Shown here: positions 1-39,329 of the stretch, one piece after another
How the letters are laid out: every line of letters begins with the position of its first letter
Numbering within the stretch: the stretch's first letter is position 1
NCBI GenBank assembly: GCA_964247055.1
Contig: OZ176052.1
Span: forward strand, 6,944,001-7,008,000
Direction of reading: 5' to 3'
DNA length: 64,000 bases
Source: Paragordius varius
Taxonomy: Eukaryota > Animalia > Nematomorpha
Notes under the pieces: model-generated
Seen by the model: only the letters and a program-made list of their open reading frames with translations
Database searches by the model: none
Told to the model about the DNA's origin: nothing
Made by a program: the position numbers and the translations under genes

Positions 1-3000
1 TATTTTCAACAATCAATATGTATTACCCATTAATATTTTAGTATTTCCAACAATCAACCAAATATTTTCAACAATCAATATGTATTAACCATTAATATTT
101 TAATCTTTCCAACAATCAACCATATATTTTCAACAATCAATATGTATTACCCATTAATATTTTAGTCTTTCCAACAATTAACCAAATATTTTCAACAATC
201 AATATGTATTACCCATTAATATTTTAGTATTTCCAACAATCAACCAAATTCAACAATCAATATGTATTAACCATTAATATTTTAGTCTTTCCAACAATCA
301 ACCATATATTTTCAACAAACAAATTATATCTCCCATTAATATTTTAGTCTTTCCAACAATCAACCAAATATTTTCAACAATCAATATGTATTACCCATTA
401 ATATTTTAGTCTTTTCAACAATCAACCAAATATTTTCAACAATCAATATGTATTACCCATCAATATTTTAGTCTTTTCAACAATCAAACATATATTTTCA
501 ACAATCAAATTATATCACCATTAATATTTTAGTCTTTCCAACAATCAACCATATATTTTCAACAATCAATATGTATTACCCATCAATATTTTAGTCTTTT
601 CAACAATCAAACATATATTTTCAACAAACAAATTATATCACCCAGTAATATTTTAGTATTTCCAACAATCAACCAAATATTTTCAACAAATATGTATTAC
701 CCATAATATTTTAGTCTTTCCAACAATCAACCATATATATTCAACAATCAAATTATATCACCATTAATATTTTAGTCTTTCCAACAATCAACCATATATT
801 TTCAACAATCAATATGTATTACCCATTAATATTTTAGTCTTTCCAACAATTAACCAAATATTTTCAACAATCAATATGTATTACCCATTAATATTTTAGT
901 CTTTTCAACAATCAACCAAATATTTTCAACAATCAATATGTATTACCCATCAATATTTTAGTCTTTTCAACAATCAAACATATATTTTCAACAATCAAAT
1001 TATATCACCATTAATATTTTAGTCTTTCCAACAATCAACCATATATTTTCAACAATCAATATGTATTACCCATCAATATTTTAGTCTTTTCAACAATCAA
1101 ACATATATTTTCAACAAACAAATTATATCACCCAGTAATATTTTAGTATTTCCAACAATCAACCAAATATTTTCAACAAATATGTATTACCCATAATATT
1201 TTAGTCTTTCCAACAATCAACCATATATATTCAACAATCAAATTATATCACCATTAATATTTTAGTCTTTCCAACAATCAACCATATATTTTCAACAATC
1301 AATATGTATTACCCATTAATATTTTAGTCTTTCCAACAATCAACCAAATATTTTCAACAATCAATATGTATTACCCATTAATATTTTAGTTTTTTCAACA
1401 ATCAACCATATATTTTCAACAATCAAATTATATCACCCATTAATATTTTAGTATTTCCAACAATCAACCAAATATTTTCAACAATCAATATGTATTACCC
1501 ATTAATATTTTAGTCTTTCCAACAATCAACCATATATTTTCAACAATTAAATTATATCACCATTAATATTTTAGTCTTTCCAACAATCAACGATATATTT
1601 TCAACAATCAATATGTATTACCCATTAATATTTTAGTCTTTCCAACAATCAACAATATAATTTCAACAATCAATATGTATTACCCATTATTTTAGTTTTT
1701 CCAACAATCAACCAAATATTTTCAACAATCAATATGTATTACCCATTAATATTTTAGTTTTTTCAACAATCAACCATATATTTTCAACAATCAAATTATA
1801 TCACCCATTAATATTTTAGTATTTCCAACAATCAACCAAATATTTTCAACAATCAATATGTATTACCCATTAATATTTTAGTCTTTCCAACAATCAACCA
1901 TATATTTTCAACAATTAAATTATATCACCATTAATATTTTAGTCTTTCCAACAATCAACCATATATTTGTAATCAAATATTTGCAACAATCATTTTATAC
2001 CACCCATTTATATTTAATTAATCAAACAATCAACCATATATTTTTAACAATCAAAATTTATCACCATTAATATTTTAGTCTTTCCAACAATCAACCATAT
2101 ATTTTCAACAATCAATATGGTTTACCCATTAATATTTTAGTCTTTCCAACAATCAACCATATATTTTCAACAATCAATATGTATTACCCATTAATATTTT
2201 AGTCTTTCCAACAATTAACCAAATATTTTCAACAATCAATATGTATTACCCATTAATATTTTAGTATTTCCAACAATCAACCAAATATTTTCAACAATCA
2301 ATATGTATTAACCATTAATATTTTAGTCTTTCCAACAATCAACCATATATTTTCAACAAACAAATTATATCTCCCATTAATATTTTAGTCTTTCCAACAA
2401 TCAACCAAATATTTTCAACAATCAATATGTATTACCCATTAATATTTTAGTCTTTTCAACAATCAACCAAATATTTTCAACAATCAATATGTATTACCCA
2501 TCAATATTTTAGTCTTTTCAACAATCAAACATATATTTTCAACAATCAAATTATATCACCATTAATATTTTAGTCTTTCCAACAATCAACCATATATTTT
2601 CAACAATCAATATGTATTACCCATCAATATTTTAGTCTTTTCAACAATCAAACATATATTTTCAACAAACAAATTATATCACCCAGTAATATTTTAGTAT
2701 TTCCAACAATCAACCAAATATTTTCAACAAATATGTATTACCCATAATATTTTAGTCTTTCCAACAATCAACCATATATATTCAACAATCAAATTATATC
2801 ACCATTAATATTTTAGTCTTTCCAACAATCAACCATATATTTTCAACAATCAATATGTATTACCCATTAATATTTTAGTCTTTCCAACAATTAACCAAAT
2901 ATTTTCAACAATCAATATGTATTACCCATTAATATTTTAGTCTTTTCAACAATCAACCAAATATTTTCAACAATCAATATGTATTACCCATCAATATTTT

Positions 3001-6000
3001 AGTCTTTTCAACAATCAAACATATATTTTCAACAATCAAATTATATCACCATTAATATTTTAGTCTTTCCAACAATCAACCATATATTTTCAACAATCAA
3101 TATGTATTACCCATCAATATTTTAGTCTTTTCAACAATCAAACATATATTTTCAACAAACAAATTATATCACCCAGTAATATTTTAGTATTTCCAACAAT
3201 CAACCAAATATTTTCAACAAATATGTATTACCCATAATATTTTAGTCTTTCCAACAATCAACCATATATATTCAACAATCAAATTATATCACCATTAATA
3301 TTTTAGTCTTTCCAACAATCAACCATATATTTTCAACAATCAATATGTATTACCCATTAATATTTTAGTCTTTCCAACAATCAACCAAATATTTTCAACA
3401 ATCAATATGTATTACCCATTAATATTTTAGTTTTTTCAACAATCAACCATATATTTTCAACAATCAAATTATATCACCCATTAATATTTTAGTATTTCCA
3501 ACAATCAACCAAATATTTTCAACAATCAATATGTATTACCCATTAATATTTTAGTCTTTCCAACAATCAACCATATATTTTCAACAATTAAATTATATCA
3601 CCATTAATATTTTAGTCTTTCCAACAATCAACGATATATTTTCAACAATCAATATGTATTACCCATTAATATTTTAGTCTTTCCAACAATCAACAATATA
3701 ATTTCAACAATCAATATGTATTACCCATTATTTTAGTTTTTCCAACAATCAACCAAATATTTTCAACAATCAATATGTATTACCCATTAATATTTTAGTT
3801 TTTTCAACAATCAACCATATATTTTCAACAATCAAATTATATCACCCATTAATATTTTAGTATTTCCAACAATCAACCAAATATTTTCAACAATCAATAT
3901 GTATTACCCATTAATATTTTAGTCTTTCCAACAATCAACCATATATTTTCAACAATTAAATTATATCACCATTAATATTTTAGTCTTTCCAACAATCAAC
4001 CATATATTTGTAATCAAATATTTGCAACAATCATTTTATACCACCCATTTATATTTAATTAATCAAACAATCAACCATATATTTTTAACAATCAAAATTT
4101 ATCACCATTAATATTTTAGTCTTTCCAACAATCAACCATATATTTTCAACAATCAATATGGTTTACCCATTAATATTTTAGTCTTTCCAACAATCAACCA
4201 TATATTTTCAACAATCAATATGTATTACCCATTAATATTTTAGTCTTTCCAACAATTAACCAAATATTTTCAACAATCAATATGTATTACCCATCAATAT
4301 TTTAGTTTTTTCAACAATCAAACATATATTTTCAACAAACAAATTATATCACCATTAATATTTTAGTCTTTCCAACAATCAACCATATATTTTCAACAAT
4401 CAATATCGTTTACCCATTAATATTTTAGTCTTTTCAACAATCACCATATATTTTCAACAATCAAAATTTATCACCATATAATATTTTAGTCTTTCCAACA
4501 ATCAACCATATATTTTCAACAATCAATATCGTTTACCCATTAATATTTTCGTCTTTCCAACAATCAACCATATATTTTCAACAATCAAATTATATCACCA
4601 TTAATATTTTAGTCTTTCCAACAATCAACCATATATTTTCAACAATCAATATGGTTTACCCATTAATATTTTAGTCTTTCCAACAATCAACCATATATTT
4701 TCAACAATCAATATGTATTACCCATTAATATTTTAGTCTTTCCAACAATTTACCAAATATTTTCAACAATCAATATGTATTACCCATCAATATTTTAGTT
4801 TTTTCAACAATCAAACATATATTTTCAACAAACAAATTATATCACCCAGTAGTATTTTAGTATTTCCAACAATCAACCAAATATTTTCAACAAATATGTA
4901 TTACCCATAATATTTTAGTCTTTCCAACAATCAACCATATATATTCAACAAATTATATCACCATTAATATTTTAGTCTTTCCAACAATCAACCATATATT
5001 TTCAACAATCAATATGTATTACCCATTAATATTTTAGTCTTTCCAACAATCAACCAAATATTTTTAACAATCAATATGTATTAACCATTAATATTTTAGC
5101 CTTTCCAACAATCAACCATATACTTTCGACAATCAAATTATATCACCATTAATATTTTAGTCTTTTCAACTATCAACCATATATTTTCAACAATCAAATT
5201 ATATCACCATTAATATTTAATCTTTCCATCAATCAACCATATATTTTCAACAATCAATATGTATTACCCATTAATATTTTAGTCTTTCTAACAATCAACC
5301 ATATATTTTCAACAGTCAATATGTATTACCCATTAATATTTTTGTATTTTCAACAATCAACCATATATTTTCTACAATCAAATTATATCACCCATTAATA
5401 TTTTATTTCCAACAATCAACCAAATATTTTCAACAATCCATATGTATTTCCCATTAATATTTTAGTCTTTTCAACCATCAACCAAATATTTTCAACAATC
5501 AAATTATATCACCTATTAATGTTTTAGTCTTTCCAACAATCAACCATATATTTGTAAAAATCAAATATTTGCAACAATCATTTTATATTACCCATTTATA
5601 TTTAATTATTCAAACAATCAACCATATATATTCATCAATCAATATGTATTACCCATTAATATTATAGTCTTTTTAACAATCAACCATATATTTTCATCAA
5701 TCAAATTATATCACCATTAATATTTTAGTCTTTCCAACAATCAACCAAATATTTTCAACAATCAATATGTATCCATTAATATTTTAGTCTTTCCAGCAAT
5801 CAACCATATATTTTCAACAATCAATATGTATCCATTAATATTTTAGTCTTTCCAACAATCAACCATATATTTTTAACAATCAAATTATATCACCATTAAT
5901 ATTTTAGTCTTTCCAACAATCACCCAAATATATATAACAATCATTTTATATTACACATTAAGATTTAATTATTCAAACAATCAACCATATATTTGCAAGA

Positions 6001-6464
6001 ATCAAATTACATCACCCATTAATATTTAATTTTTCCAACAATCAGCCAAATATTTATAACAATTAAATAATATTTGCAAATCATTTTATATCACCCATTA
6101 ATAATTAACTATTGCAACAATAATCATATATTTTCAGCAATGAATTTGTATAACCCATTAATATTTTAGTCTTTCCAATCACCTAAATATTTATAACAAT
6201 CACTTTATATCACCCATTGAGATTTAATTATTTCAACAATCAACCATATATTTTCAACAATCAATATGTATTACCCATTAATATTTTAGTCTTCCCAACA
6301 ATCACCCATATGTTATAACAATCATTTTATATCACCCATTAATATTTAATTATTAAAACAATCAACCATATATTTTCAACAATCAATATGTATTACCCAT
6401 TAATATTTTAGTCTTTCCAAAAATAAACCAAATATTTGTAACAATCAAATATTTGCAACAATCA
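1..6464. repeat. Satellite DNA array, ~62-bp monomer, with higher-order repeats; extends beyond the left window edge
   Basis: Monomer TATTTTCAACAATCAATATGTATTACCCATTAATATTTTAGT(C/A)TTTCCAACAATCAACCA(A/T)A recurs at 1, 63, ...; about 100 copies; near-identical blocks at offsets 368, 490 and 2041; degenerates progressively from ~5.1 kb to 6.46 kb. Confidence 0.98.
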
Positions 6465-24201: not shown

Positions 24202-27200
24202 TTATTGTTTATCCAGAAAATCCTCCAACTTTTTTTGCATTGTACCAAATACTTCATCGTTTGGAAACTGAATGACAACTGTTAACATGCTGTTTTTTGC
24301 TGTATCAAAATCCTTTAACCAAATTAGCACCTAAAATATCACAATAAATAATTATATAAGCATATTTTTTTATCAATAGAAACAATTTTTCAACCAAACT
24401 CACACATTTCCAACCAAACAGAACATTTCTAAAACAACTTTTTACTTATTCTCTAAACTCAACACTATTATCGAGTGCCAATAAATTTTTTGAACGTTTA
24501 AGTATATAGACCCTCTAGTTTTAATTTAATTCGATTTTTTTCCTAAAATATTAATCCAAATTTTTGGGGGTATAAATTTAATTTAAATTGCTTTAACGCA
24601 TTTTGAACGAAAACATTGATTATTAATAAAAACTTTAAAATTTAATGCGTATTTCATATTTAAAAAAATATTTTTTGAACAAAGTTTTATTTAATTTAAA
24701 AATGCTTGAAAAAGTGTCGAGTTTGTTTGAAAAAAAAACATAGTATAATTATGGATGACACTACATAAAAAGGTGTTACATAATCAAACCAAAAAAACTA
24801 CTGATATATAGCAGTCAAGAAATTCTTCGAAACAAAAATTTTCTGATTCAAAGATAGATCTTGATTGATTGTGAGATAGACAAAAGTTTAGTGTTGCGCG
24901 CAAACTATCATCATACCACTTAATTAAACGCTGAACATTCCTGTCCGCTACTTTGATGTTGAGCCCTAAAATACCGACAAAATATTACCAATGATGTATA
25001 CAATAGCACAGCGTAACTAAATATTTTCGTTAAACTAAGCAAAAATTTTGTTTTTGACTGAGCATTGCTAAAAATCTCATATTTACTTCTTTAAAGTATA
25101 AAAGGAATATATATAGCCGTATCTCAAAATTATTATTATTTTAAAAAATAATACGGCCATGTTTTTGCATTCAACCCAATTTTTTTAAATAAGAGTAAAT
25201 CCACATTTCCGAAAGATAGCAGATTCAATCAATTAAATTAAAATTATATTTTCATGGGATTAAGATTTTCACCCAATACATATTTTTACATTTTCCGAGT
25301 GCAATAAAATAAATATATACTTTAGAGAGATAAAAATATATAAAATTAACTGTGTATATTATTTTATGATGAATCATTGTTAGCGAAATCTTATAACCTA
25401 GACGACATTAATAAAATTAGTTATAATCACTGATTTTTGATACATCTTGAAAGTTGCAAAATAAATTACGTTATAATTTAAACTTCCTTATCTTATATAT
25501 TGAAATTATTTAATTATAATTGTTAAAATTTACGGCAATGAACAATTAAAAAGCAACAAATAGGCAATTTATATAACAAAGTTTTGCTTAATTTTTAATT
25601 AATTAGTATAAAGGTTTAAATAGTTTGATAAATTAGTTTTAATTGTTAATCTATCGTTCTATAATATACCATTTACATTTTCGCCCCAAAACATCAAATC
25701 ACCCCTAAACAATTCAAATTCAGCCTAAAAATGAAATGCTTCGCTTCATATTACTAAATTAAAAGGAAAAATTATCGTTTTTCTTTGGCGACTATTTTGC
25801 CATATAATAATTTTTTTGCATAATTCATTAATAAATGCAGAGTGAAAATATCTACTTTAAAAAAAAATTCTTTATTTTTGTATTTTTTGATGACATTCCA
25901 AGAATATAATACAAACATAAATAAAACAATTATAAGCGATAAATCATTTATTAATCAAAGTATGTTATAGTCTAATTCTTGGTGCACATATGCCCCTCCG
26001 CAGCATTTGAAATTGACATAATCGCAAAAGCCTTTATCATCTGATGCCGTTATTTGTTGGCATCCATAACTAATTAAACCCTTTAATAATACAGCACTTT
26101 TCTTATTTTTTGAGAAAGCAACATAAGATTTCACTTTGGAAAAACCCGTTTCCTCGGTTTAGCATGTAGCTATTTAGGGCCAAAAATGAAATATTGTATG
26201 TTCATCTATCAGCTATTTTCTTAAAACTTCCTTCTTATAAATCTTTCCATTAACCATCTTAAATGATTTCCATCCATATTCGAGGAGGTAAGATATTCAC
26301 ATAATTCTTTTAAAAAATTAGAGAATATAGGCAGGTAAGGTTCAGGACTCCAGATTCGATTCTGGCCAAGAAGTATAATTTCCGCCACAACTTACAATCT
26401 TTACATTGTTCTGTCGAAAAGCTACATTGATTCAAGTCCATTTTTATGTTATCATTATACGAAAAGAGTGGTCGCCCTTTCTTCTTTTGCCATCAACATT
26501 AATGTTTTCCCTAGTATTTAGAGGGTGGGATATGATCATTTATATTTCTTTCACAATCTATTTTATGAAATACGATTCCATGAAACCATAGAGCAACGAT
26601 AAGGGTTATGATTCTTCTTTTTATGTTAGGAAGCTCAATGGCCCTTGTACCACGTTTGGATCTTCCGAACTTTCTCCTGAGGTGATTGTGGAAACTACAC
26701 TCATCGATGAACACTACTTTTGATGTATCACAACAACACAACCAAATGTTTCGTTGAACTAAATACGTGCTACTTTATCTTGATTATTTCCAGGTAATTT
26801 ATTTTTAATCTCAGTAGAGTTTTTTTGTTGTTATAGTGGTCTTTGATAGTATTTGAATACTGCTGCAAGAAATACGAAGATCGCATTCATGTTTAAAATA
26901 TTTTGTGATTTTAGAATGTTTTCGCTAATTTTTTCTTCGAGTATGGTTGGTTACAATACAATTAATATCTTTTGATATCTATTTCCACCTATCGATTTAC
27001 ATTATTTTTTTGTAGTTTATAACAAATGATATGGCGGTTGTATAATTGATATCCAACGATTCAGCCACCCTTTTTATTAAATATCCATCCATAATTGTTG
27101 ATCTTATCAGGCATTCTTATCATTTTCACTTAAATTAACTTTTTACCTCTAATTTAGAAGACCAATAATAGAAATATCACAATCTTGATTTGTTGAGGCT

Positions 27201-30200
27201 ATTTATTATAAAAAAAATGCCTGCTAGTTGGGTGGTTAAAATAATCTTCGGTTTATTTTGTGTGCAATGTAAAATATTTTTTATAACATATATTTACTAA
27301 AATTGAATTTCACTCTAAAAACACTAAAATTATTTTTAGAACATGAATGCGATTTTTTTCTTGCAGGAGCATTTAAAATACCATCAAAGAACTTGCTATA
27401 ATAATGAAAAAACTCTATCGAGATTAATAAAATAAATGATCCGGACACAATCAATAAAAAGTAGGACGCATTTGGTTCAACGGTTGTGATATATCAAAAA
27501 TAGTGTTCATCGATGAGTGTAGTTTCCACAACCACCTCAGGAGAAATTTCGGAAGATCCAAACGTGGTACAAGGGCCATTAAGCTTCCTAACATAAAAGG
27601 AAGAAACATAACCCTTTTTGCTCTGGGGGCGTATGGAATTGTATTTTTTAAAATAGAATGTGAAATGAATGTAAATGGTTTTCTTTTTTTCAAAAAATTA
27701 ATAGCATATCTTACCTCTTCGAATATGAAAGAAACTCATTTTAAAAATGAATAATGCAAAGATGTACAAGAAGGAAATTTTAAAAAATATAGCTGATAGA
27801 TATGCATACAAAATTTTATTTTTGACCCTAAACAGCTACATTCTCACCCCGATATAAAACGGGTTTTTCAAAGTAAAATCTTGTGCTAGTTCCTAAATTA
27901 TTAATGAAAGTGATGCATCATTAAAGGATTTAATTATTTATGGATGTCAACAAATAACGGCAGATGTTAAAGGCTTTTGCGATTAAGTCAATTTCAAATG
28001 CTGCGGAAAGGCGTGCATATGTGCACCAACAATTATTTTTATAAACTATATACCTTATTTATAAATATATTATTAAATGATTTATCGCTTACAATTTATC
28101 TATATTTGTATTATAAATGTCATCAAAACACAAAAATTATGAAATTTATCATTTTTCTTTGCAAAACCATGCAAAAATTATCAATATATGGCAAAATAGT
28201 CTCCAGAGAAAACTAACTTTTAATTTTGATTATATGATGCAGTCGAGGGTAAATTAGTATTGTTCAGCGATGAATTAAATTGTTCAAGGGTGAATAAAAC
28301 TGTAAATGGTATACTAACCATCAAAAAAATATTTAATCTCTTGATTTATATATAACTCGGGCATTTATCATATATATTTTTTATTTTTAATAGTAATTAT
28401 TTTGATACCGATTAAACAATATAAAATATAAAGTACAATTTAGGATTAAGTTTAACGTATGTGTAATTGGAAAATGCAAAAAACTCGAATGGCAGAATTT
28501 GTTATCTATTGTAATTAGGATTGCATTATGTGCGTTTTAGTCATTCAATGAATTTATTAAAAAACATATTATAGATTAAAACTAAATAATTTTATGCAAC
28601 CATATGCTAAAATGGAAACTTTTTTAAAAATACACTAAATTACACATTAAAAGATACTGTTGAATAGGCATTTTAAAAAAATTTTTAAAAATTTTATAAA
28701 AAAATTATAAAAACCTTCACTTATGTTGATGCTTTGGGTGCTTTCTTTGGTTACAACTTGCGAAGATGAAGAAAAAATTTGTTCAAGCAATTGTGAACTA
28801 CTATGTTTTTCCACAGCGTTGAGAAAAGAGGTGGAAAAATTGCTTAGGTCAAACGATTTTTCATAATTATCATTTTCATTGGTTGTATCAAAATCGAAAG
28901 GAGTGAAGAGTTCTTCTAAAATAATTAATAAAGCCATAATATACAATTTAACCATCCCATTTTTACACCGTAAAATTCCTACTTTAAATATGAAATATTT
29001 GATCTTAAAAAAATGCCATGTTCGAAATTTCGGATTCTGAAATGGGTTTTCTATTGGAAAATAGGATAATTAGAAAAACTACATATAAACCTAAATTTGG
29101 CCCTTAAATAATTTAGTCTTACGTTAACTTTAAAAGGCATAATATGAATTGTGGCTATGAAAACATGGTTAAAACTGGTATGAATATTTAATAAGTAATA
29201 AAAAAATAATTTTTGATATTGGTCGGCACCCTATATTATGTAATAAGTGTGCTTTATTTAAACTTTTAATATTGGAAAGATTAAAAAGTCTAACTTTCAA
29301 GTATGATCAGAGCTAAATATTACTTGATACATGTATTACTCAAACCGCAGACCACGGGCGGCCGGCCCTAAAACTACTTTTTTATGGCCCTAAATTATTG
29401 AATTAATTTTTTAAATTTAAGAATTCAATCATTTAAGTGATTTCCATATTTATTTATTTTTAAGAATTTTTAAAATTGCGTAATTGGTAGTTTTTTAATT
29501 ATACAAGTTTATTTTATAAAAAGAATTTCCGGCCTTTTTCAACTTATGCTTTAGTTTTGATAATATGCATCTTGATGAGGAAATTATCGACTATAAAATG
29601 TTTCCAAATCAGAAATATTGAAAGGAAATGGCAAAGGTAAAAAGTATATTGAGTTTAGGCAAGATGTGCCAAATAAATTTTATAAAAATGTGCTGAAGTT
29701 ATGTTTATATTGTTTTGTCTCAACCAACACCGAGGCATTATAGTCTGTTATGATAAACAGATTTGTGAAAAATTATTGATAAATTAAATAATATCCATTT
29801 AATATCAAAATATTTGTGTATAACCTGAAAAAATACATATACTGATTTAGTTTAGAAACATCTACATATGATGATAAGCATTATTTGTCAGCATTATATT
29901 ATGGCACTTGAGACAAAAAATCATTTTCTTCCGCCCTTCAAAATTTTTTGAGCGAGTACCACTGCTTTATACATTTAATTTGCTATCTGACATCCATTTA
30001 TTATATTTAACAAAAACTTATTTTTTTTCAACTCTTGTCCTACTAGATTGGAATAGCTTATAAATACGATTTAACTAAACTGATTTTAAGATCAGTAAAC
30101 AAGTTTTTGCTGGTAAATGCAACCTGAAAGCTACTAAAGTTAATTTATTTACATTTTTGTTACTTAAGCAAATATTCACATGATGTTATCTTTCAACCTA

Positions 30201-33200
30201 GTTCTAGTTCTTCATTTATGCAAATAATTATGATCATAATTTTTTGTTATGATATAAATTTTAGTGATATTTGCATAGTCTATATTTTTATATTTTTGTA
30301 TTATGGAAATAACAGATCCATTAGTTGCTCGAAATTTTATTTGTTTTATTTGATATCATTCAAATTATGTTCACACAAAAATATTATATAAAGAGAAAAA
30401 CGAATAAACAACTTTTAGGTATTTACTACTTTTTACATTTTTCTAACCATAATATACATTTATTTGCTTCTATTAGGAATTTAAAATAAAAAAAGGATGA
30501 CGGCCAAGTTTGAGATAAGGATTTTTTACGATTTATATTTTTTTTTAAAAAAATTTCGTATGTGCCCAAGTGGCTAAAGAAAGCATATTTTTAAATTCCA
30601 CCTAATACTTTAAACACTTTTTAAGATATTCAAATTTCAAATCGCTCGGATATAAAACGTCATGGAGTGTTAATATAGCAATTTTCATAAATTAAATTTA
30701 TTAATGGCTAAAAAACAATACTGTGTTAAACCCTTCATTAACCTTTTTGCATTAAAAATTTATTTTGGGATAAATAAAAATCCAGAGCCTTACACTTGTA
30801 ATAAAATAAAATACTAAATGGTCTTTTAAAGTCTAAAATTTAGATAGCACTCAAAGTTACTTAAACAGCTTAAATATTAGGTTTAAATTGGTGTCAAACA
30901 AAATCAAAAACAATTAACTAATTTTTTTTACCATAATAAATTTTTATTAAACGATTTTTTAGCTGTTTTAACACCGATTCATATTGGGGTATCTGAATAC
31001 CCCGGTTTTAAATTGATATTTTAAAAAAAAATCTGAAACGGTTCCATTTTAAATTTATGCTTATATCAATAAATATTATATAATTAAACCAAAATACCTA
31101 ATTGAAATTTAGTTTGAAAAAAAAGTTCCATATCAAACTATTTCGGCGCCACTTTTAACAACCTTTGCTAAATATCCTATTTATTTAACTTTAAAGTTAA
31201 AATAAAAGCTAATTTTTTATTTAACTCACATCTAACATTGATAGAAACAGAGGAAGTATTATATTTTGCATTATTTTTACATTTAGCTTATGCACACATG
31301 TCATGTTAACAAATTTACCTTTGGTTTTACCTCTAAATAAGTAATATCAAGTATTTTTTAATAATTTTTTTTATATTTCGGTTCAGTAATGTTATATTGC
31401 AAACGTTTGCATGGTTTCAATTTTTCTCATATTTTTCAAAATATTTAATTTTAAACATGCCTGGGGTATCTAACTACCCCAATTTGAATCAAAGGATGAT
31501 TGCGTTGTATCCAAGTGTTAAAAAAAAATCTGAAATGGCCTAAAAATTTAAGATGATTTTTTTTAAAAATATTTTTTGTGTAAAGCGTCTAAAATGCCAT
31601 AGAATGCTATATTTAAGGCCGGTAGAAAACCAAAGGGTTGTTAAATTTCATTTGAAGATAAAGATGTTTTCTGGGCGATTTCCGAAAAAAAATAAAAAAT
31701 ATTTGTCGCCAAAAAGTTTAAAATGATAATCAATTTACATACATTTATTAATTTTGTTTTATATTTTTATAGATTGCCTATTTATAAATTTTAAAACCGG
31801 CTTAGTTTTTTATATATATATTGAATCGCTATGAGGGTGTTAAGTTAACACTTGGATACAACACATTCATTTCAGTCCTTCGATTCAAATTGGAGTAGTT
31901 GGATACCCCAGGCCTTAAGAAATAATTCAAAAAATATGGAATAAATTAAAAACCATGGCAAAAATTTGCATTCATATAACATAAATGAACCAAAATATAT
32001 AAAAAAATTCCATAAAAAATACTTGATATAACTTATTTTAAGGTAAAAACACATGGTAAAAAATTATGCCTTCATCGACCTTGAAAAGGCATTCGATTCG
32101 GTACTCCGAACTCTAATCTCATGGGCCCTACGAAACAAAGGCATTGACGAATGGATGATTAAATCAATAATGGCATTATATACCGAGTGCAAAGCTGAGG
32201 TGGCGACAAGCGTAGGGTACTTCGATTCTCTCTCAATTAACTCCGGGCTGATCAAGGCTCGCTTTTAAGCCCGTTCTTGTTTATTACTATCATGGATAAA
32301 ATCACCAAACCCTTAGACCAAGGCTTACCATACAATCCTTTATGCCGATGACTTAGCATTAATGGTAAACAGTGAAGTGCAATTAAACACAAATCTCGCG
32401 AGATGGAAAAAACGGCTAGAGATGTTTGGACTTAAGGTTAATGTATCAAAAACAAAATTAATGAACGATAATAATAAATATAATCCTGTTAAATGGCCCT
32501 GCTCAATATATAATAAAAAAGTCAAAACCAACGCAATCCAATGTCTCAAATATAAAAAATGGGTCCACAAAAAATGCTCTCAGTTGAAATCGCTAAAATT
32601 ACTTCACGATTTAATATGCAGCAATTGCACCGCGCCCAACCCAGCTAAACCTCCACAAAGTGTACGTAATGAAGAACCTTTTGAACAGTACAAAGTTTCA
32701 CATATTTGGGTGTAAGCGCTGGTGGGGGCCTAGAACCAACCATAAATAACCTAATAAAAAATGCCTGGTCAAAATACCACCATGTCAAAAGTATTATGAA
32801 CAATAAATACATCTCATTCAAATCCAAATCGACTATGTACACCACCACCATACGACCCGTTCTAATTTACTTACCGGAAGCTATGGCTTTAACCAAAACA
32901 AATTCACTAAAGTTACAACAAGCGGAAAGTAGAATTCTAAAAACTATACTTTATGCAACAAACCCAAACCTCTATAGCTACAATAATAAATTTGATCCAT
33001 GTCCTACAAAGGACTCCGCTTATCGATTGTTTGCGCACAAATCGTCTGAGATTAGCGGGACATGTTCACTGACGCCCACATGAAAGTTGGCTATACCGCA
33101 TGGTCAATTTTTCTACAAGTTTGCGAAATCGTAAAGGACGTCCATCAAAAAGTTGGCATTCTATTGTGGAAAACGATCTGGTGATTTTAAATCTGAAAAT

Positions 33201-36200
33201 TGAAGATGCGCAGGACCGATGCTTATGGCGTACATCTATCCGAAGGGTTACCTCCTTGTTGGGAAAAAACCCTTAAAGATTGATAAAGGTTGACATGTGT
33301 GCATTAGCTAAATTGAAAAATAATACAAAATAAAACGCTTTTTCTATTTCTATCAATGTTAAATGTAAAATAAAAAATTAGCTTTAATTATACCCTAAAA
33401 ATTAATTGAAGACGATATTTTGCAAAAATTTTGTAAACTAAAAATGGCGGCGAAGTTGTTTGACATAAAACTTTTTTTTCAAAACAAAATATCATTTGGA
33501 TATTTTGGCATATTTATATAATTTTTATTAGGATAAAAGCATAAATCTAAATTGGGACCGTTTCTTTCAGTAATTTTTTAAAATATCAACTTAAATATTG
33601 TCCGGGGTATTTAGATACCCCAATTTGAATCAAAGTGTTGACCAGAAAAAAATTTTGCTTGAAGAGTCAACCGGCATATAATGGCGAATCCTCAAAAAGT
33701 ATCAATTAATTTTTAAAATAAAGCGTTAATTTATAAAAAACAAAAAATAGAATTAAATAATTATTTAAATTTTTTTAAGTCAAAAATATGAATATACCAT
33801 CAGGATGTCCCAAAACTGAATCTACGTTGCCGGACTGATAGGTTATATATAAATTATTTGGAAGTAATGAAGTAAACTCGCAATTATTTTCTTTTTGTAA
33901 TAGTATGAATTGGGAAATATTTCTGACCCATTTGGATAATAAATATAATTTAATAACATCTACTGGCCAAGAACGATTAATTAAGCCATCAAGTTTCTAG
34001 ATTTTATCATTGACTTACTTGAGACAATTCGTTAACGATTGTTGCATATAATTTTTTCTGAAATCTTATCTGAATTTGATACCATAATTTTTCAGGTTCA
34101 TACAATGATACAAAATCGCATACCCTGCCATTAAATAAATATACTTTATAAATTCATTGGATTGGTCAACGTCTCGAAAAATTTTGGTTCCATACTTTAC
34201 AGTACATATATAAAAATCTAACCTTCCAAATTATCTTTTGATTTTGTTGTGTTGGATTTTTGCTTAGCTCATGTATTAATTTAAAAAGCAATTCATATTC
34301 ATTTTTTATCAGGCATTCTTCCATCAAATCATGCATATACCGGTAAGAAAATTTAATAATTTGTGAGTGCTGCATCAAAAAGAAAACGATAATATATATT
34401 TTCAATATGTCCTAACTCTTTCATGTTACGACCATATCACGTTGAAAACACCGGTTCCCTTCCGAACACCGAAGTTAAGCAACGTAGAGCCTGGTTAGTA
34501 CTTGGATGGGTGACCGCCTGGGAATCCCAGGTGTCGTAACTTTTTTTTAAATTAAAAAAATTTACCGATTACTAGCCTCTTCGCTGTATTCGTTTTTTTA
34601 ATCAATAAAGTTTGGAAAATATTATAAAATAATAAATGACCAATTATTAAAAAATATATAGTAAATTTCTCTTATCATATTTACGGACTAGATATGCTCT
34701 GCCACACATCGTTGTGGTAATTAAAATTTATTTAGCAATAAACTTTGGATGAAAGTCTTGAAAAAAAATGTTTCCAAACTATATTTTTTATAATCAAAAT
34801 GTCATTGGGAATCCCTCTTAGTCATAGGTCTCAAAGAAAAATATCTTCGGGCGGGAAAAATTATCCAAGTTTAATAAATATTGGAAAGGAGTAAGTATAT
34901 AGCTAGAAAATTATTAAATATTGCCAAATAGCATGCAAAGAGATTTATTATTGGCTAATAATACTAAAAAGTCTATAAGCCAATAATACCGCCCTTTGCT
35001 GTATATGCTATTTGGCAATAATTAATACTTTCTAGCAATGTATACTTTCTCATACTGTATTTCCACGCCTTTGCACTAGTGTGGGAAAAAGAAAAATGAA
35101 AAAAATAATTTGCACTCAATTTAAATTGCAACATACATAAATTAAAATAAGAAATTTTAAATGATTAGATAAAATATGTCCTTTTTTGCTTATAAATGCT
35201 GTCTATAGTCTACGTCGGTAAAAATAATAAAATAATCATCAACTATTAAGTCAGCCTCCGGATATCCTTTGTAATGGAACATCAGTTCTAAATATAAATG
35301 TTTTTAAAAAGGTTTTTTAAAACTTTTTAAGCGTACAATTCTTGTTACATCTACCAGGTTGTTGTTTTTTAAAACTATAAGTATACATTAAGAAATATCT
35401 TTGAAGTTTGAAAAACACGAATATTTTATATACATTTTTAACCGTCAACCAAACTCTACAAATTTTCAACCAAAATCAACACTTTTTCATTAAAAAATTA
35501 ATACTTATTTTAGATTAACTATAACTTAAAATAGGTTCACGTTTAATAAATTTTTAAAATCAAAATCTGGGAGTTTTTTTGTTGATATTTAATTCATTAA
35601 GTTGTATAATGTTAAAACTTTGGTTTAAAAAAGCGTTATATATAAAAAAATACTACTAAAGTAAATTATTTTTTGGCCAAAAATTAAAACTTATACTAAT
35701 TAATATGTTTGAAGGATTCGATTCGCATCTAATAAAAATCAACTAATATTACATTTAAAATAGACCACTTTTGCTTCAAGAGTGTCCTTGAACACTTCAA
35801 GTTGGTCGTCGAACATTTTTAAGTGGTCCCTGAACATATTTTCGTATGTAACATTTATTAATTAAACCATGTATAAATCTTCTATCTTAACACTTTTAAC
35901 GTATTACACTGTGTGCAAAATTTTTTTTGATGAGATACCTTATGACAGGAAATTCATTTGCCGCAAAATTTGTTGACGACCTAGATTTGAAATATTGAGA
36001 GAAAATTGAAGTTGGCCAAAAAGTGAAAATTAAGAATAATTATGGATAATTAAAAAAATAATGATAAAACTTGAGAAATTAGATCATCATCATTAATCGG
36101 ATTTTACAATTTATAATAGAATTAAACATTTTAATCACCTCAAAGTTTTGATTAAATATTAGTTAAATATAGCATATATTACTTATATATTAAATTTTTT

Positions 36201-38269
36201 TATAGCTCAATCCCGACATTTTGCGCTTATTTTGAGGAGTAGCCCATTTAAGAAGGGACATGAGCCCACATCTAATGATTAAAATGTTTTGAAAGTTTTT
36301 TTGTTATATGTAATTTATGATATATTTTAGTGATATTTACGGAATAAAGTCTTTAGCATTCACCAAAAAAATTTATTTATATAAAGCGCGCAAATTATCC
36401 CATTTTCTGATGCGCAGCACTTACCACATAAACGTAAAGAAATTTCTTAAATCACTCGTAAGGGCCACAAGCACCATTAATCATGATTTCCTATCAGAAT
36501 ATATGTATGTATTTTATGACTTTATAATTTCGTGAAGACTCTGTAATCGGTTAATATTAATTTTGATAAAATTAAGTTTTGAGGATTTTACATAAATAAT
36601 TTGATGATGCCATAAACTAGCATATATTAAAAATTATATCTCGGCATCCTTCTATTTTAACACTTCATTAATTATAGGGTAGTTTTAGAACCCAGAGTGA
36701 AACAATATTTAAATATCTAAAAAATATATAAAAGGTATTAGACCAACTTTAGTCATATACTTCTAATAAATCTCGAAAAAGAGTGAAATAATAAAATTCT
36801 TTATCTCAAACTTATTTGCCGCCATATTTCTTCAGATTCTTTCCATCGGAACAGGAAAATAACGTATTTTATGGCTTAATAATATAAATTATTACTTTTG
36901 GAAATGACCTGTTTATTTTAAACGTGTTTTACAGCTAAAATTTGAACCTCTAGTCAAAATATGTTAATATATAAGATAAACTTTTAAAAACGTACATTTT
37001 CTGTTTTTTTCCGAGGGGCTAAAACTACCCCAAATTGTAATCGCTCAAAAAATGAAAGTGTAATGAAGCGTTAAAAATATTCTATTCTCGAATTCCACAT
37101 GAAAAAATTATTTTTCAAATGTATAAGAATCACCATGCTCTTGTTTTTTTTCCATTCTTTACCAAATATTTATACCATTTAACGAAAAAAATAATTTTTT
37201 GATGGATACATGACTGTACATTAATGTGATCCGATATTTTGAACTTGGACATAGTACAAAATTAAAACATACTTTGCCTGTTTTTACAGCATAGGTGTGG
37301 TATATAACACAGTTTCCACAAAAAATTTCCAGATGAAATATATATACTTTGATATGAAAATATCAGGATTATCATGGTGCTTTTGGTTTAAGTTTTTAGA
37401 TGTGGGCTCTGAAAGTCCCAAATTTTTTGGTTCTTTTAAAATGGACGCTCTCTTAAATTAATCGCAAAAATTCCGAGAATATGCAATAGTTTTAAATATA
37501 TGCTAAATTTTGATATCAACTAAATATATTTTTTAAAAAATGCATATACTCTCAAAAATTTGATTTTTAGCAAATTTTGTTGAAGCATACATCATACTAA
37601 TTTCAGCATGATGGAAACGATACAAACGGTTGTTATAACATTTTTATATAATTCGATAATGCTCTCAATCAGAATTTTGAAAATATTCGTTCGTTTTCAA
37701 ATTATGTTTTTACGAAAATTCACCAAAATTTGCAAGAAAACAAACCTTTAAATTAAAACTCTATGTTCAATATCATCGAATTATTTAGAAAAAGGATTAT
37801 TATATCTTAAAGCGAACCATTCCATCATACTTCAAATAAAAGTATTCAACAGAATATCTCAAATTCGTTGCAAAAAATAAGAAAACTAATAAACATATTA
37901 GGAATAAAATTAAGTTACATACCTCATACCTAATGAGAATAGAAAAAGTAAATCTCTTAATTTTTACGGAAAAAAGGCAATTTCGAAATCATATGCCATA
38001 ATAATAAATATAATAATTACGGAACTATATAATTTTCTATTTGATAATTTTAACAAAAAATAACTCTAACTTTGATCAAACATTTATTAATATATCATAA
38101 ATTAATTTTGTTAATTTTTAATTTTGAGGCACCTCTATTTGCAGAAGCCCTGAGTGAAAGAGCCATTAGCCTGAATCTTACGGTGGAATCCGAGATTTAT
38201 AGTTTCGCCACTGCGCGAAAGGCTGCAATCATAAGCGGTTTGATCGATTTTTAATCCAATTTTATGCAT
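24202..38269 (-). CDS. TAF1A: Hidden 8-exon gene, TAF1A/Rrn11-like (RNA polymerase I SL1/core-factor helical-repeat subunit), ~320 aa
   Basis: Candidate exons (-): 38269-38182, 35287-35244 (or -35214), 34369-34223, 34124-34019, 33959-33878, 28915-28715, 24965-24802, 24330-24202. All are GT-AG and phase-compatible except one junction (see findings). Collinear motif matches to human TAF1A as recalled from memory: MEECLIKNEY~IQEALLKHQW; KIIWK-VCDFVSLYEP~EIIWK-LGSEILFYHP; YATIVNELSQMLL~YLKISLQHALYLL; FEEFLDCYISVLIWLKDFDTAK~[22 protein letters not shown]; FPND...LEDFLDKQ~FPSN...LYNFLKRQ. The first two exons are the least certain. Confidence 0.55.
25667..28311. mobile_element. Palindromic Tc1/IS630-superfamily (DD34E) element made of two diverged inverted transposase pseudogenes
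   Basis: Both ends are TA|TACCATTTACA. Left copy (-, ~27130-25965) has an HTH (KRVAESLDINYTTA), GGNRYQKI linker and VFIDECSF...GRSKRGTRA. Right copy (+, ~27300-28030) has FIDECSF, MNNA (D>N) and PI* (E>stop), with 34 residues between the second D and E positions. Confidence 0.88.
29331..29964 (+). mobile_element. hAT remnant
   Basis: Right end ...GAGTACCACTG (CAGTGGTACTC terminus), flanks CTTGATAC/CTTTATAC (7/8 match as 8-bp TSD), GC-rich subterminal GCGGCCGGCCC, degraded hAT-dimerisation-like peptide (LDEEIIDYK...CFVSTNTEAL*SVM). Confidence 0.4.
30968..31521 (+). mobile_element. TTAA-flanked piggyBac-like MITE, copy A (~546 bp)
   Basis: TTAA|CAC...GTG|TTAA; subterminal inverted motif GATTCAAATTGGGGTA...TACCCC, close to one end and ~22 nt further in at the other. 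Confidence 0.8.
31845..33641 (-). mobile_element. Same MITE family, copy B, inverted relative to A and interrupted by an RTE retroelement
   Basis: TTAACACTTGGATACAAC is the reverse complement of copy A's right end. Homology resumes at ~33290 (TGACATGTGTGCA) and ends GAATCAAAGTGTTGA at 33641. Confidence 0.8.
32052..33295 (+). pseudogene. 5'-truncated RTE-clade non-LTR retrotransposon (reverse transcriptase with internal PHD-like finger)
   Basis: FIDLEKAFDSV, QGSLLSPFLF, LYADDLAL, GLKVNVSKTK, WPCSIYNKKVKTNAIQCLKYKKWVHKKCS...ICSNC, RPVLIY, RLRLAGHV, KGRPSKSW...AQDRCLWR; several frameshifts. Confidence 0.92.
34391..34402 (+). promoter_or_regulatory. TATA-like element at about -30 of the 5S gene
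   Basis: AATATATATTTT at -34 to -23 of the 5S start; weak evidence in such AT-rich DNA. Confidence 0.3.
34425..34543 (+). rRNA. 5S rRNA: 5S rRNA gene (single dispersed copy)
   Basis: GTTACGACCATATCACGTTGAAAACACCGG...AAGTTAAGCAACG...TAGTACTTGGATGGGTGACCGCCTGGGAATCCCAGGTGTCGTAAC; perfect terminal helix GTTACGAC/GTCGTAAC, boxes A and C present, followed by T8. Confidence 0.98.
34541..34548 (+). terminator. RNA polymerase III terminator (T8)
   Basis: Run of eight T immediately 3' of the 5S helix I. Confidence 0.9.
34894..35046. mobile_element. Short hairpin/MITE-like palindrome
   Basis: AGTATATAGCTAGAAAA..ATTGCCAAATAGCAT..TATTATTGGCT mirrored by AGCCAATAATA..ATGCTATTTGGCAAT..TTTCTAGCAATGTATACT. 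Confidence 0.65.
36657..37074. mobile_element. TTAA-flanked piggyBac-like MITE, second subfamily
   Basis: TIR TTAACACTTCATTA / TAATGAAGCGTTAA, plus internal GGGTAGTTTTAG repeat with asymmetric spacers; an isolated matching right end at ~22350-22402. Confidence 0.8.
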
Positions 38270-38731
38270 AATTCGTGCAAAAAATAAAATATTAACCAAT
38301 TAAAAATAGGCCAATCTTAGTTTTTTACCGAAAAATGAACAATATCTTTTCAATTATGGGTTTATTTTTACAGAGGGTACTATATCAAATTCTAAAATAA
38401 TTTGTTTGAAAAAAGGTAATTAACATATATTCATAAATAATTAATTTAATTTCAAAAGGCAGTACAAAAGTGGGAGCAGTACAATCGCAGTTTTTTTCTG
38501 AAAATCCAGTACTGTACTGCGAAAAAAGCAGCCTATCTGCATTACTGATTGCTTTCCTTTTTTAATATAGTTTATATTAATGTGCGCTATAAGCTTTTCG
38601 ATATCTAGCAATCATCACAAAAGTAAAAATGTTGTACCAGAATTTAATGGCTTGTAACCATAAAAAATGTTATAAATATTAAATGAACGTTATATTTCCT
38701 AATGTAATATTGGTATAAATAAGAAAATGCC

Positions 38732-39265
38732 TTGAACACTTCGATTCATTAGGATTTTTTAAAAACTAAAGTAGGAAACGGTCCCAATTTGAATTATGCT
38801 TCTATCCAAATAAAAATTATATAAATATGTTAAAATACCTAAATAAAATTTTGTTTTTAAAAAAAGTTCCATGTCAAACTACTTCAACGCCATTTTTAAT
38901 TTACAAAATTTTTGCAAAATATCGTCTTCATATAATTATAAGGTAAAAATAAAGCTTTTATCTGAATTGCAACTAAATAGAAAAATCGGGCTTTTTTGTA
39001 TTATTTTTCATTTTTATCATTGCAAACATGTCACGTTGACTAAATTTTTACCTTTCGGTTTTAGCTTAAAATAAGTAATATCAAGTATTTTTGAATAAAA
39101 TTTTGTATATATTACGGTTTTTTAATGTTATATAAGTGCAAAATTTTGCCATGGCTTCGATTTTTCCATATTTTTTAAAGAATTCAATTTTAAACAGGCC
39201 TGGACTATCTAACTACCCCGATTTAAATCGCAGGACCAAAAGGAATGTGTTGTATCCAGGTTTGA
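38732..39265 (+). mobile_element. MITE copy C (family of copies A/B), ending ~64 nt upstream of the TEX2 ATG
   Basis: Collinear with 30972-31517 (GAAACGGTCCCAATTT, ATGTCAAACTA, AATAAGTAATATCAAGTATTT, ATCTAACTACCCC, TGTGTTGTATCCA). Confidence 0.8.
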
Positions 39266-39329
39266 GCTTATTTTATTATTTTTAACATGCTTTAATATGA
39301 ATGTATAATAATTTGCTTGATTGGGCTAA

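Follow-up and report, generated by a model that had tools for sequence, protein, structure and literature searches.

The locus described here raises the question of whether a gene transcribed by RNA polymerase (Pol) III can be tied to a gene serving Pol I. In a 64-kb stretch of the genome of the nematomorph Paragordius varius, hereafter the window, the initial annotation placed a 5S rRNA gene antisense at the 5' end of a putative gene for a TAF1A-like Pol I factor and raised the possibility that 5S output and Pol I capacity are coupled. If functional, such a pairing would connect in cis, and in a simple manner, the two polymerases making ribosomal RNA.

The 5S rRNA gene and its paralogues

The window contains an intact 5S rRNA gene on the plus strand (34424-34542), which matches the full Rfam model RF00001 (positions 1-120) without truncation and with a score of 119.2 bits (gathering threshold 38; E 9.7e-26). 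As originally proposed, the mature RNA most likely begins at G34425, given how helix I closes (GUUACG/CGUAAC). It is the sole RNA gene that Rfam detects within the 64-kb window, and no tRNA genes were found in the window. Two further signals were read from the sequence, namely a run of eight T residues directly after the gene (34541-34548, plus strand), corresponding to a Pol III terminator, and a TATA-like upstream element, ATATATAT, at 34392-34399 of the plus strand (-33 to -26 relative to the 5S gene). The T-run terminator combined with the upstream TATA-like element points to an ordinary Pol III-transcribed type-1 gene with an internal control region, which is probably active. Its immediate flanks (33640-34423 and 34543-34888) are unique DNA.

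The gene was initially described as single, which holds within the window but not in the assembly as a whole. The count and mapping of all 5S copies that had been suggested as a check were carried out over the 110.6 Mb and 44 contigs of the assembly, and yielded 19 5S-like copies dispersed over five contigs (all 19 blastn candidates were scored); cmsearch of the whole assembly gave 19 5S matches above threshold and one decayed match. The window copy has the highest score of the 19, approximately 15 of which are full-length, the other four being truncated or decayed. The total of 19 is a lower bound, given that published nematomorph genomes are 200-300 Mb in size (bioRxiv 10.1101/2024.06.11.598342) and the assembly may accordingly be incomplete.

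A run of at least four T residues ends every full-length copy. The flanks diverge from the first base outside the gene, the 119-nt gene alone being common to the copies, and the content shared by their 3-kb neighbourhoods consists of interspersed repeats in varied positions. Across these otherwise unrelated flanks, TATA/ATAT words peak at -34 to -27. Within the gene, the G2:C117 pair is changed to A:U in five copies, a compensatory replacement, and U69/A106 and C69/G106 are perfectly correlated (4 versus 11 copies). Such compensatory changes among paralogues, by which the helices of RF00001 are kept, are signs of what would be selection on the structure of the 5S RNA. The window copy has the U69/A106 variant and, at position 63, an A found in no other copy. 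An origin of the copies as a 5S-derived SINE or a TRIM/LTR element was considered and rejected, the copies sharing no non-5S body, tail or LTRs. Collectively, the sequences describe a small, dispersed and apparently structurally constrained 5S family, of a kind known mainly from fungi.

Tandem 5S arrays are the rule in animal genomes. One review (PMC10946416), with reference to Drouin and de Sa 1995, describes 5S genes as 'very occasionally dispersed across the genome', and dispersed 5S genes are described in a study on Yarrowia (PMC2566860). The nematomorph copies resemble the dispersed families of Neurospora, Aspergillus and Yarrowia in their unrelated flanks and distribution over several chromosomes, as well as in their own terminators, the TATA-like element near -30 and the persistence of sequence variants. 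They differ from the fungal families in residing in an animal, in their very low copy number (19) and in that several of them have one repeat family upstream.

Two sets of 5S loci on contig 4 display a local history of their own. Copies L012 and L015 (at 4.90 and 5.30 Mb) share upstream DNA that is 96% identical over 1.2 kb and downstream DNA that is 90% identical, the mark of a segmental duplication that took the 5S gene along, and the L015 copy has begun to decay. A loose cluster at 291-315 kb comprises six to seven copies in 25 kb (L004, L005, L009, L013, L016 and L020), in both orientations and some of them decayed.

Homology and structure of the TAF1A-like exon

Coding sequence of the TAF1A-like gene is first detectable in an exon on the minus strand at 34208-34375 (putative ATG at 34375; aligned part 34208-34366), within an antisense open frame of 81 codons (34411-34169, minus strand) that carries the EECLIKNEY...IIWK motif and the ATG at 34375-34373. 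Frames of 81 codons are not rare in DNA so AT-rich, with about 1-2 per 10 kb outside transposon remains, and the exon is taken as real because of its homology rather than its length. An exhaustive phmmer search with window 34196-34375 (minus strand) as the query against 1.84 billion representative proteins returned exactly one match, P0001, a protein of 533 aa deposited at NCBI for the horsehair worm Gordionus sp. m RMFG-2023 (E 1.9e-5, 45% identity), with exon residues 5-55 aligned to P0001 residues 23-73. In a BLASTP comparison of the two, 23 of 51 residues were identical, without gaps (E 2e-13). P0001 scores 39.8 bits on PF14929 (TAF1_subA; cut-off 31.8), in line with its precomputed Pfam annotation, and the domain begins at its residue 40. 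Conversely, when P0001 was searched against the whole assembly, the sole match was window 34208-34366 (E 3.8e-7). The exon is single copy in the assembly, and a repeat origin was rejected on these grounds.

As in the TAF1A/TAFI48/Rrn11 family (PF14929), the exon carries an N-terminal helical block (...KFSY...E.EL..KL..ELS..PT..NQ..IWK), which aligns to the domain start of the Gordionus member; in contrast to that family, none of the window pieces matches the Pfam model directly, and the remainder of the protein could not be followed. When 18 minus-strand open pieces of the window were searched piece by piece, none gave a direct Pfam match to TAF1_subA at E <= 10, and all searches were made exon by exon. 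A six-frame search of the genome with PF14929 yielded no candidate and was uninformative, since control genomes gave none either. A PDB sequence search with two window pieces had no match, and a word-index protein search found no candidates for the exon and P0001 alone for P0001, whereas the ESM Atlas gave the exon only a generic PPR/TPR-like helical-repeat flavour (top score 0.89). The exon is thus homologous to a TAF1A-family protein, as the initial annotation had proposed, through a chain of two steps (from the exon to P0001 and from P0001 to PF14929) rather than a direct Pfam match, and it encodes the conserved N-terminal block of such a protein at the only locus of this kind detectable in the assembly.

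Intron signals were calibrated on three tubulin genes, in which donors are GTA-type, acceptors are mostly YAG (with one AAG) and the shortest introns measure approximately 49-56 nt. Against this background, several parts of the gene model initially proposed fared poorly. The exon end at 34223 (donor GTTAGA) implies an intron of 28 nt, and the next junction one of 22 nt, both atypical; moreover, the protein alignment to P0001 continues past 34223, to about 34208. A GTATGG donor at 34195 is a candidate for an alternative 3' end of the exon. Proposed exon 1 (38182-38269, minus strand) lies inside a copy of a repeat, denoted Y (38025-38539), with about 460 first-look candidates genome-wide, and is very unlikely to be a TAF1A exon. 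Proposed exon 2 (35244-35287, minus strand) consists of single-copy DNA and has neither homology to back it nor a typical donor, its GTTGAT being unlike the calibrated ones. No upstream coding exon, including exon 2, resembled the N-terminus of P0001 better than the plus-strand control.

Downstream, searches of the window with P0001 by tblastn, phmmer and Smith-Waterman found no further solid TAF1A exon besides the first, and a test for collinear chains of additional exons scored 217 against a null of 212 +/- 15. One piece, 24787-24984, beats shuffles in its comparison to P0001 (0 of 500 as good) and reaches a phmmer E of 0.06 (best plus-strand piece 0.75), yet it did not attain significance in BLASTP.

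Geometry of the locus and its possible meanings

The coordinates initially given, and the distance of 55 nt from the acceptor at 34370 to the 5S start, are correct. The ATG at 34375, which we infer to be the start codon of the TAF1A-like gene, is divergent from the 5S gene and 50 nt from its +1. We consider it slightly better than an even bet that this ATG is used and that the two genes stand head-to-head; a 5S gene lodged in an intron is the less favoured arrangement, with the small remainder going to an exon that is a relic. If the ATG at 34375 is used, the region of Pol II initiation of the TAF1A-like gene must overlap the promoter and body of the 5S gene, and local interference between the two transcription units would be physically plausible.

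The same geometry recurs elsewhere. The divergent strand upstream of all 5S copies was inspected (18 loci), and in one of them, L007 (5S gene at 3102023-3102141 of contig 4; locus 3100523-3103641), a katanin p60-like gene is oriented head-to-head with the 5S gene, its ATG at a distance of 89 nt from the 5S +1. Six residues after this ATG, a match to PF21126 (KATNA1_MIT) sets in at profile position 1 (40.2 bits, E 2.6e-10), and no acceptor precedes the start codon. Pfam searches of 90 open pieces lying up to 1 kb from the remaining 5S genes recognised no exon other than that of katanin. The geometry is thus shared by a katanin p60-like gene and not peculiar to a gene for a Pol I factor.

Tentatively, dispersed 5S genes in this lineage might be found by preference, whether through placement or through retention, at the 5' ends of Pol II genes and divergent from them, as compact Pol II/Pol III head-to-head units, which in the window would tie the promoter of an SL1 subunit to Pol III chromatin. 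We consider such a general preference rather improbable; the verified cases are two among about 15 intact 5S copies. Two verified gene starts at 18 loci compare with about 0.1 expected, a rough estimate that assumes 12,000 gene starts, and bare open frames of such length beside a 5S gene have a background probability of about 0.08-0.10, two of 18 loci being a small sample. The preference is accordingly treated as a lead and not as a result.

The main alternative to the head-to-head arrangement places the 5S gene inside a 5' intron of the TAF1A-like gene, on the opposite strand, such that Pol II reads through it and the 5S promoter shares DNA with the branch-point/polypyrimidine region of the acceptor at 34370. 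We regard this reading as the less likely of the two. In its favour, a strong acceptor-like site, consisting of a polypyrimidine tract and CAG (ttttctttttgatgCAG; 34370-34395, minus strand, AG at 34371-34370), directly precedes the conserved coding region and overlaps both the ATG and the 5S upstream region, so that an undetected upstream exon, coding or not, could be joined to it; in the Gordionus homologue the aligned block is preceded by 22 residues, whereas a start at the ATG at 34375 would leave 4 here; and the region 35100-35420 is single copy, leaving room for an exon. These points are countered by the fate of both proposed upstream exons, one of them within a repeat and the other with a donor that departs from those of the tubulin genes, by the upstream open pieces, none of which exceeded the plus-strand control in similarity to the homologue's N-terminus, and by the katanin p60-like gene, whose conserved start codon lies close to a 5S gene with no acceptor before it. 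It is unlikely that the exon is instead a remnant of a gene in decay, which would leave the 5S gene simply intergenic. About 55 residues in one statistically supported exon are all that is demonstrably homologous, Pfam TAF1_subA matches no window piece directly, the chain test gave no signal for more exons, transposon remains lie 0.5-2 kb downstream of the exon, and joining the adjacent open frames would take the two very short introns mentioned above. On the other hand, the exon stays open for 81 codons, aligns without gaps to a distant homologue at 45% identity and has no TAF1A-like counterpart elsewhere in the assembly, and the rapid divergence of TAF1A proteins leads one to expect short, unrecognisable exons.

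Least probable, and by a wide measure improbable, is a functional pairing in which transcriptional interference or shared chromatin couples 5S synthesis by Pol III to how much of an SL1 subunit is available to Pol I. The predicted space for TFIIIB (approximately 34385-34415) does lie within 10-40 nt of the TAF1A-like ATG, and the locus is the only TAF1A-like one in the assembly. Nevertheless, the window gene accounts for about one in 15 intact copies, a small share of 5S output that makes it a poor lever on 5S supply; the katanin p60-like gene, without a link to Pol I, has equal geometry; and many other ribosome-related neighbours would have looked as meaningful post hoc. The coupling put forward in the initial annotation is thus weakened by both the 19 dispersed copies and the katanin case. 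In the literature searched, no report of linkage between 5S and TAF1A genes was found.

The evidence as a whole points to an ordinary member of the dispersed 5S family whose neighbour is accidental. We favour, with moderate confidence, a 5S copy that stands head-to-head with the TAF1A-like gene, the pairing being a by-product rather than a dedicated link between Pol I and Pol III. Under the head-to-head reading, 5S copies would land or survive near the 5' ends of Pol II genes, the juxtaposition would most likely follow from where they do so, and the pairing itself is probably incidental.

As in the linkages of 5S to spliced-leader RNA, histone and snRNA genes, the 5S gene is close to and divergent from a gene of another polymerase; those linkages, in contrast, are repeated multigene units conserved across copies, whereas here one of 19 copies adjoins a single-copy protein gene. 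In yeast and human, tRNA genes and TFIIIC sites occur near Pol II start sites, and the present loci are similar in that a Pol III gene lies less than 100 nt from the 5' end of a protein gene, twice in this assembly; they differ from the yeast and human neighbours in being two loci only. At the level of the genome, the result is an animal with only about 19 scattered 5S genes, whose sequences bear signs of selection for RNA structure. At least two abut the start codons of protein genes, and many have a member of one repeat family beside them, in constant orientation. This is relevant to the means by which 5S families outside tandem arrays spread and remain active.

Repeats and other features of the window

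The window is AT-rich (23-30% G+C) and contains few long open frames. Repeat Y, of about 555 bp and with a hairpin near its 3' end, is represented by the copy at 38025-38539 (plus strand), which is 82% identical over 525 bp (blastn) to the repeat found near other 5S loci. It occurs upstream of 7-8 of the 18 5S loci (L005, L006, L009, L010, L012, L017 and L019, with a fragment in L011), always in the orientation of the 5S gene, at distances of 76-1164 nt between its 3' end and the 5S gene; the spacers are not homologous between loci. No copy was seen upstream of the 5S gene of the window. Targeting of Pol III genes in general by repeat Y is unsupported, given that 20 other copies had no tRNA gene or Rfam RNA nearby.

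An abundant repeat of about 350 bp, denoted X, occupies 33291-33639, downstream of the TAF1A-like exon. It has about 3,800 first-look candidates genome-wide, with copies approximately 87-90% identical, and is also present near six other 5S loci (L005, L006, L012, L014, L015 and L019). Between the 5S gene and proposed exon 2 lies a MITE-like inverted-repeat element (34889-35060), which matches the DNA upstream of the 5S gene at L003 in both orientations. Short frames with PGVSNYPNLNRRT recur at window positions 31397-31543, 31832-31945 and 39136-39285 and at one of the tubulin loci (L025), and probably represent another MITE-like family.

A single-copy open frame of 140 codons at 28650-29069 (minus strand) is too long for chance in such AT-rich DNA and may or may not be part of the TAF1A-like gene. 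Its match to the cyclin_C domain of Rrn7/TAF1B (14.4 bits) was dismissed as noise, three other loci scoring 14.8, and the best match to the Rrn7 zinc ribbon is elsewhere on the same contig; Pfam gave noise-level matches only for this frame, and PDB was blank.

Two features look like remains of transposable elements. Broken frames on the plus strand at 32053-33276 (YAFIDLEKAFDSV...), 0.5 kb away on the downstream side of the TAF1A-like exon, have by eye the look of the reverse-transcriptase part of a non-LTR retrotransposon, and a fragment at 26514-26774 (minus strand) resembles a DDE_3 transposase of the Tc1/mariner type (PF13358; 19.9 bits, E 7e-4, below the cut-off). The first 6450 positions of the window (1-6450) are a satellite array with a 62-bp unit and a higher order of 124/490 bp, at approximately 85-88% matches, and display a very strong strand bias of C over G (GC skew -0.45 to -0.75).
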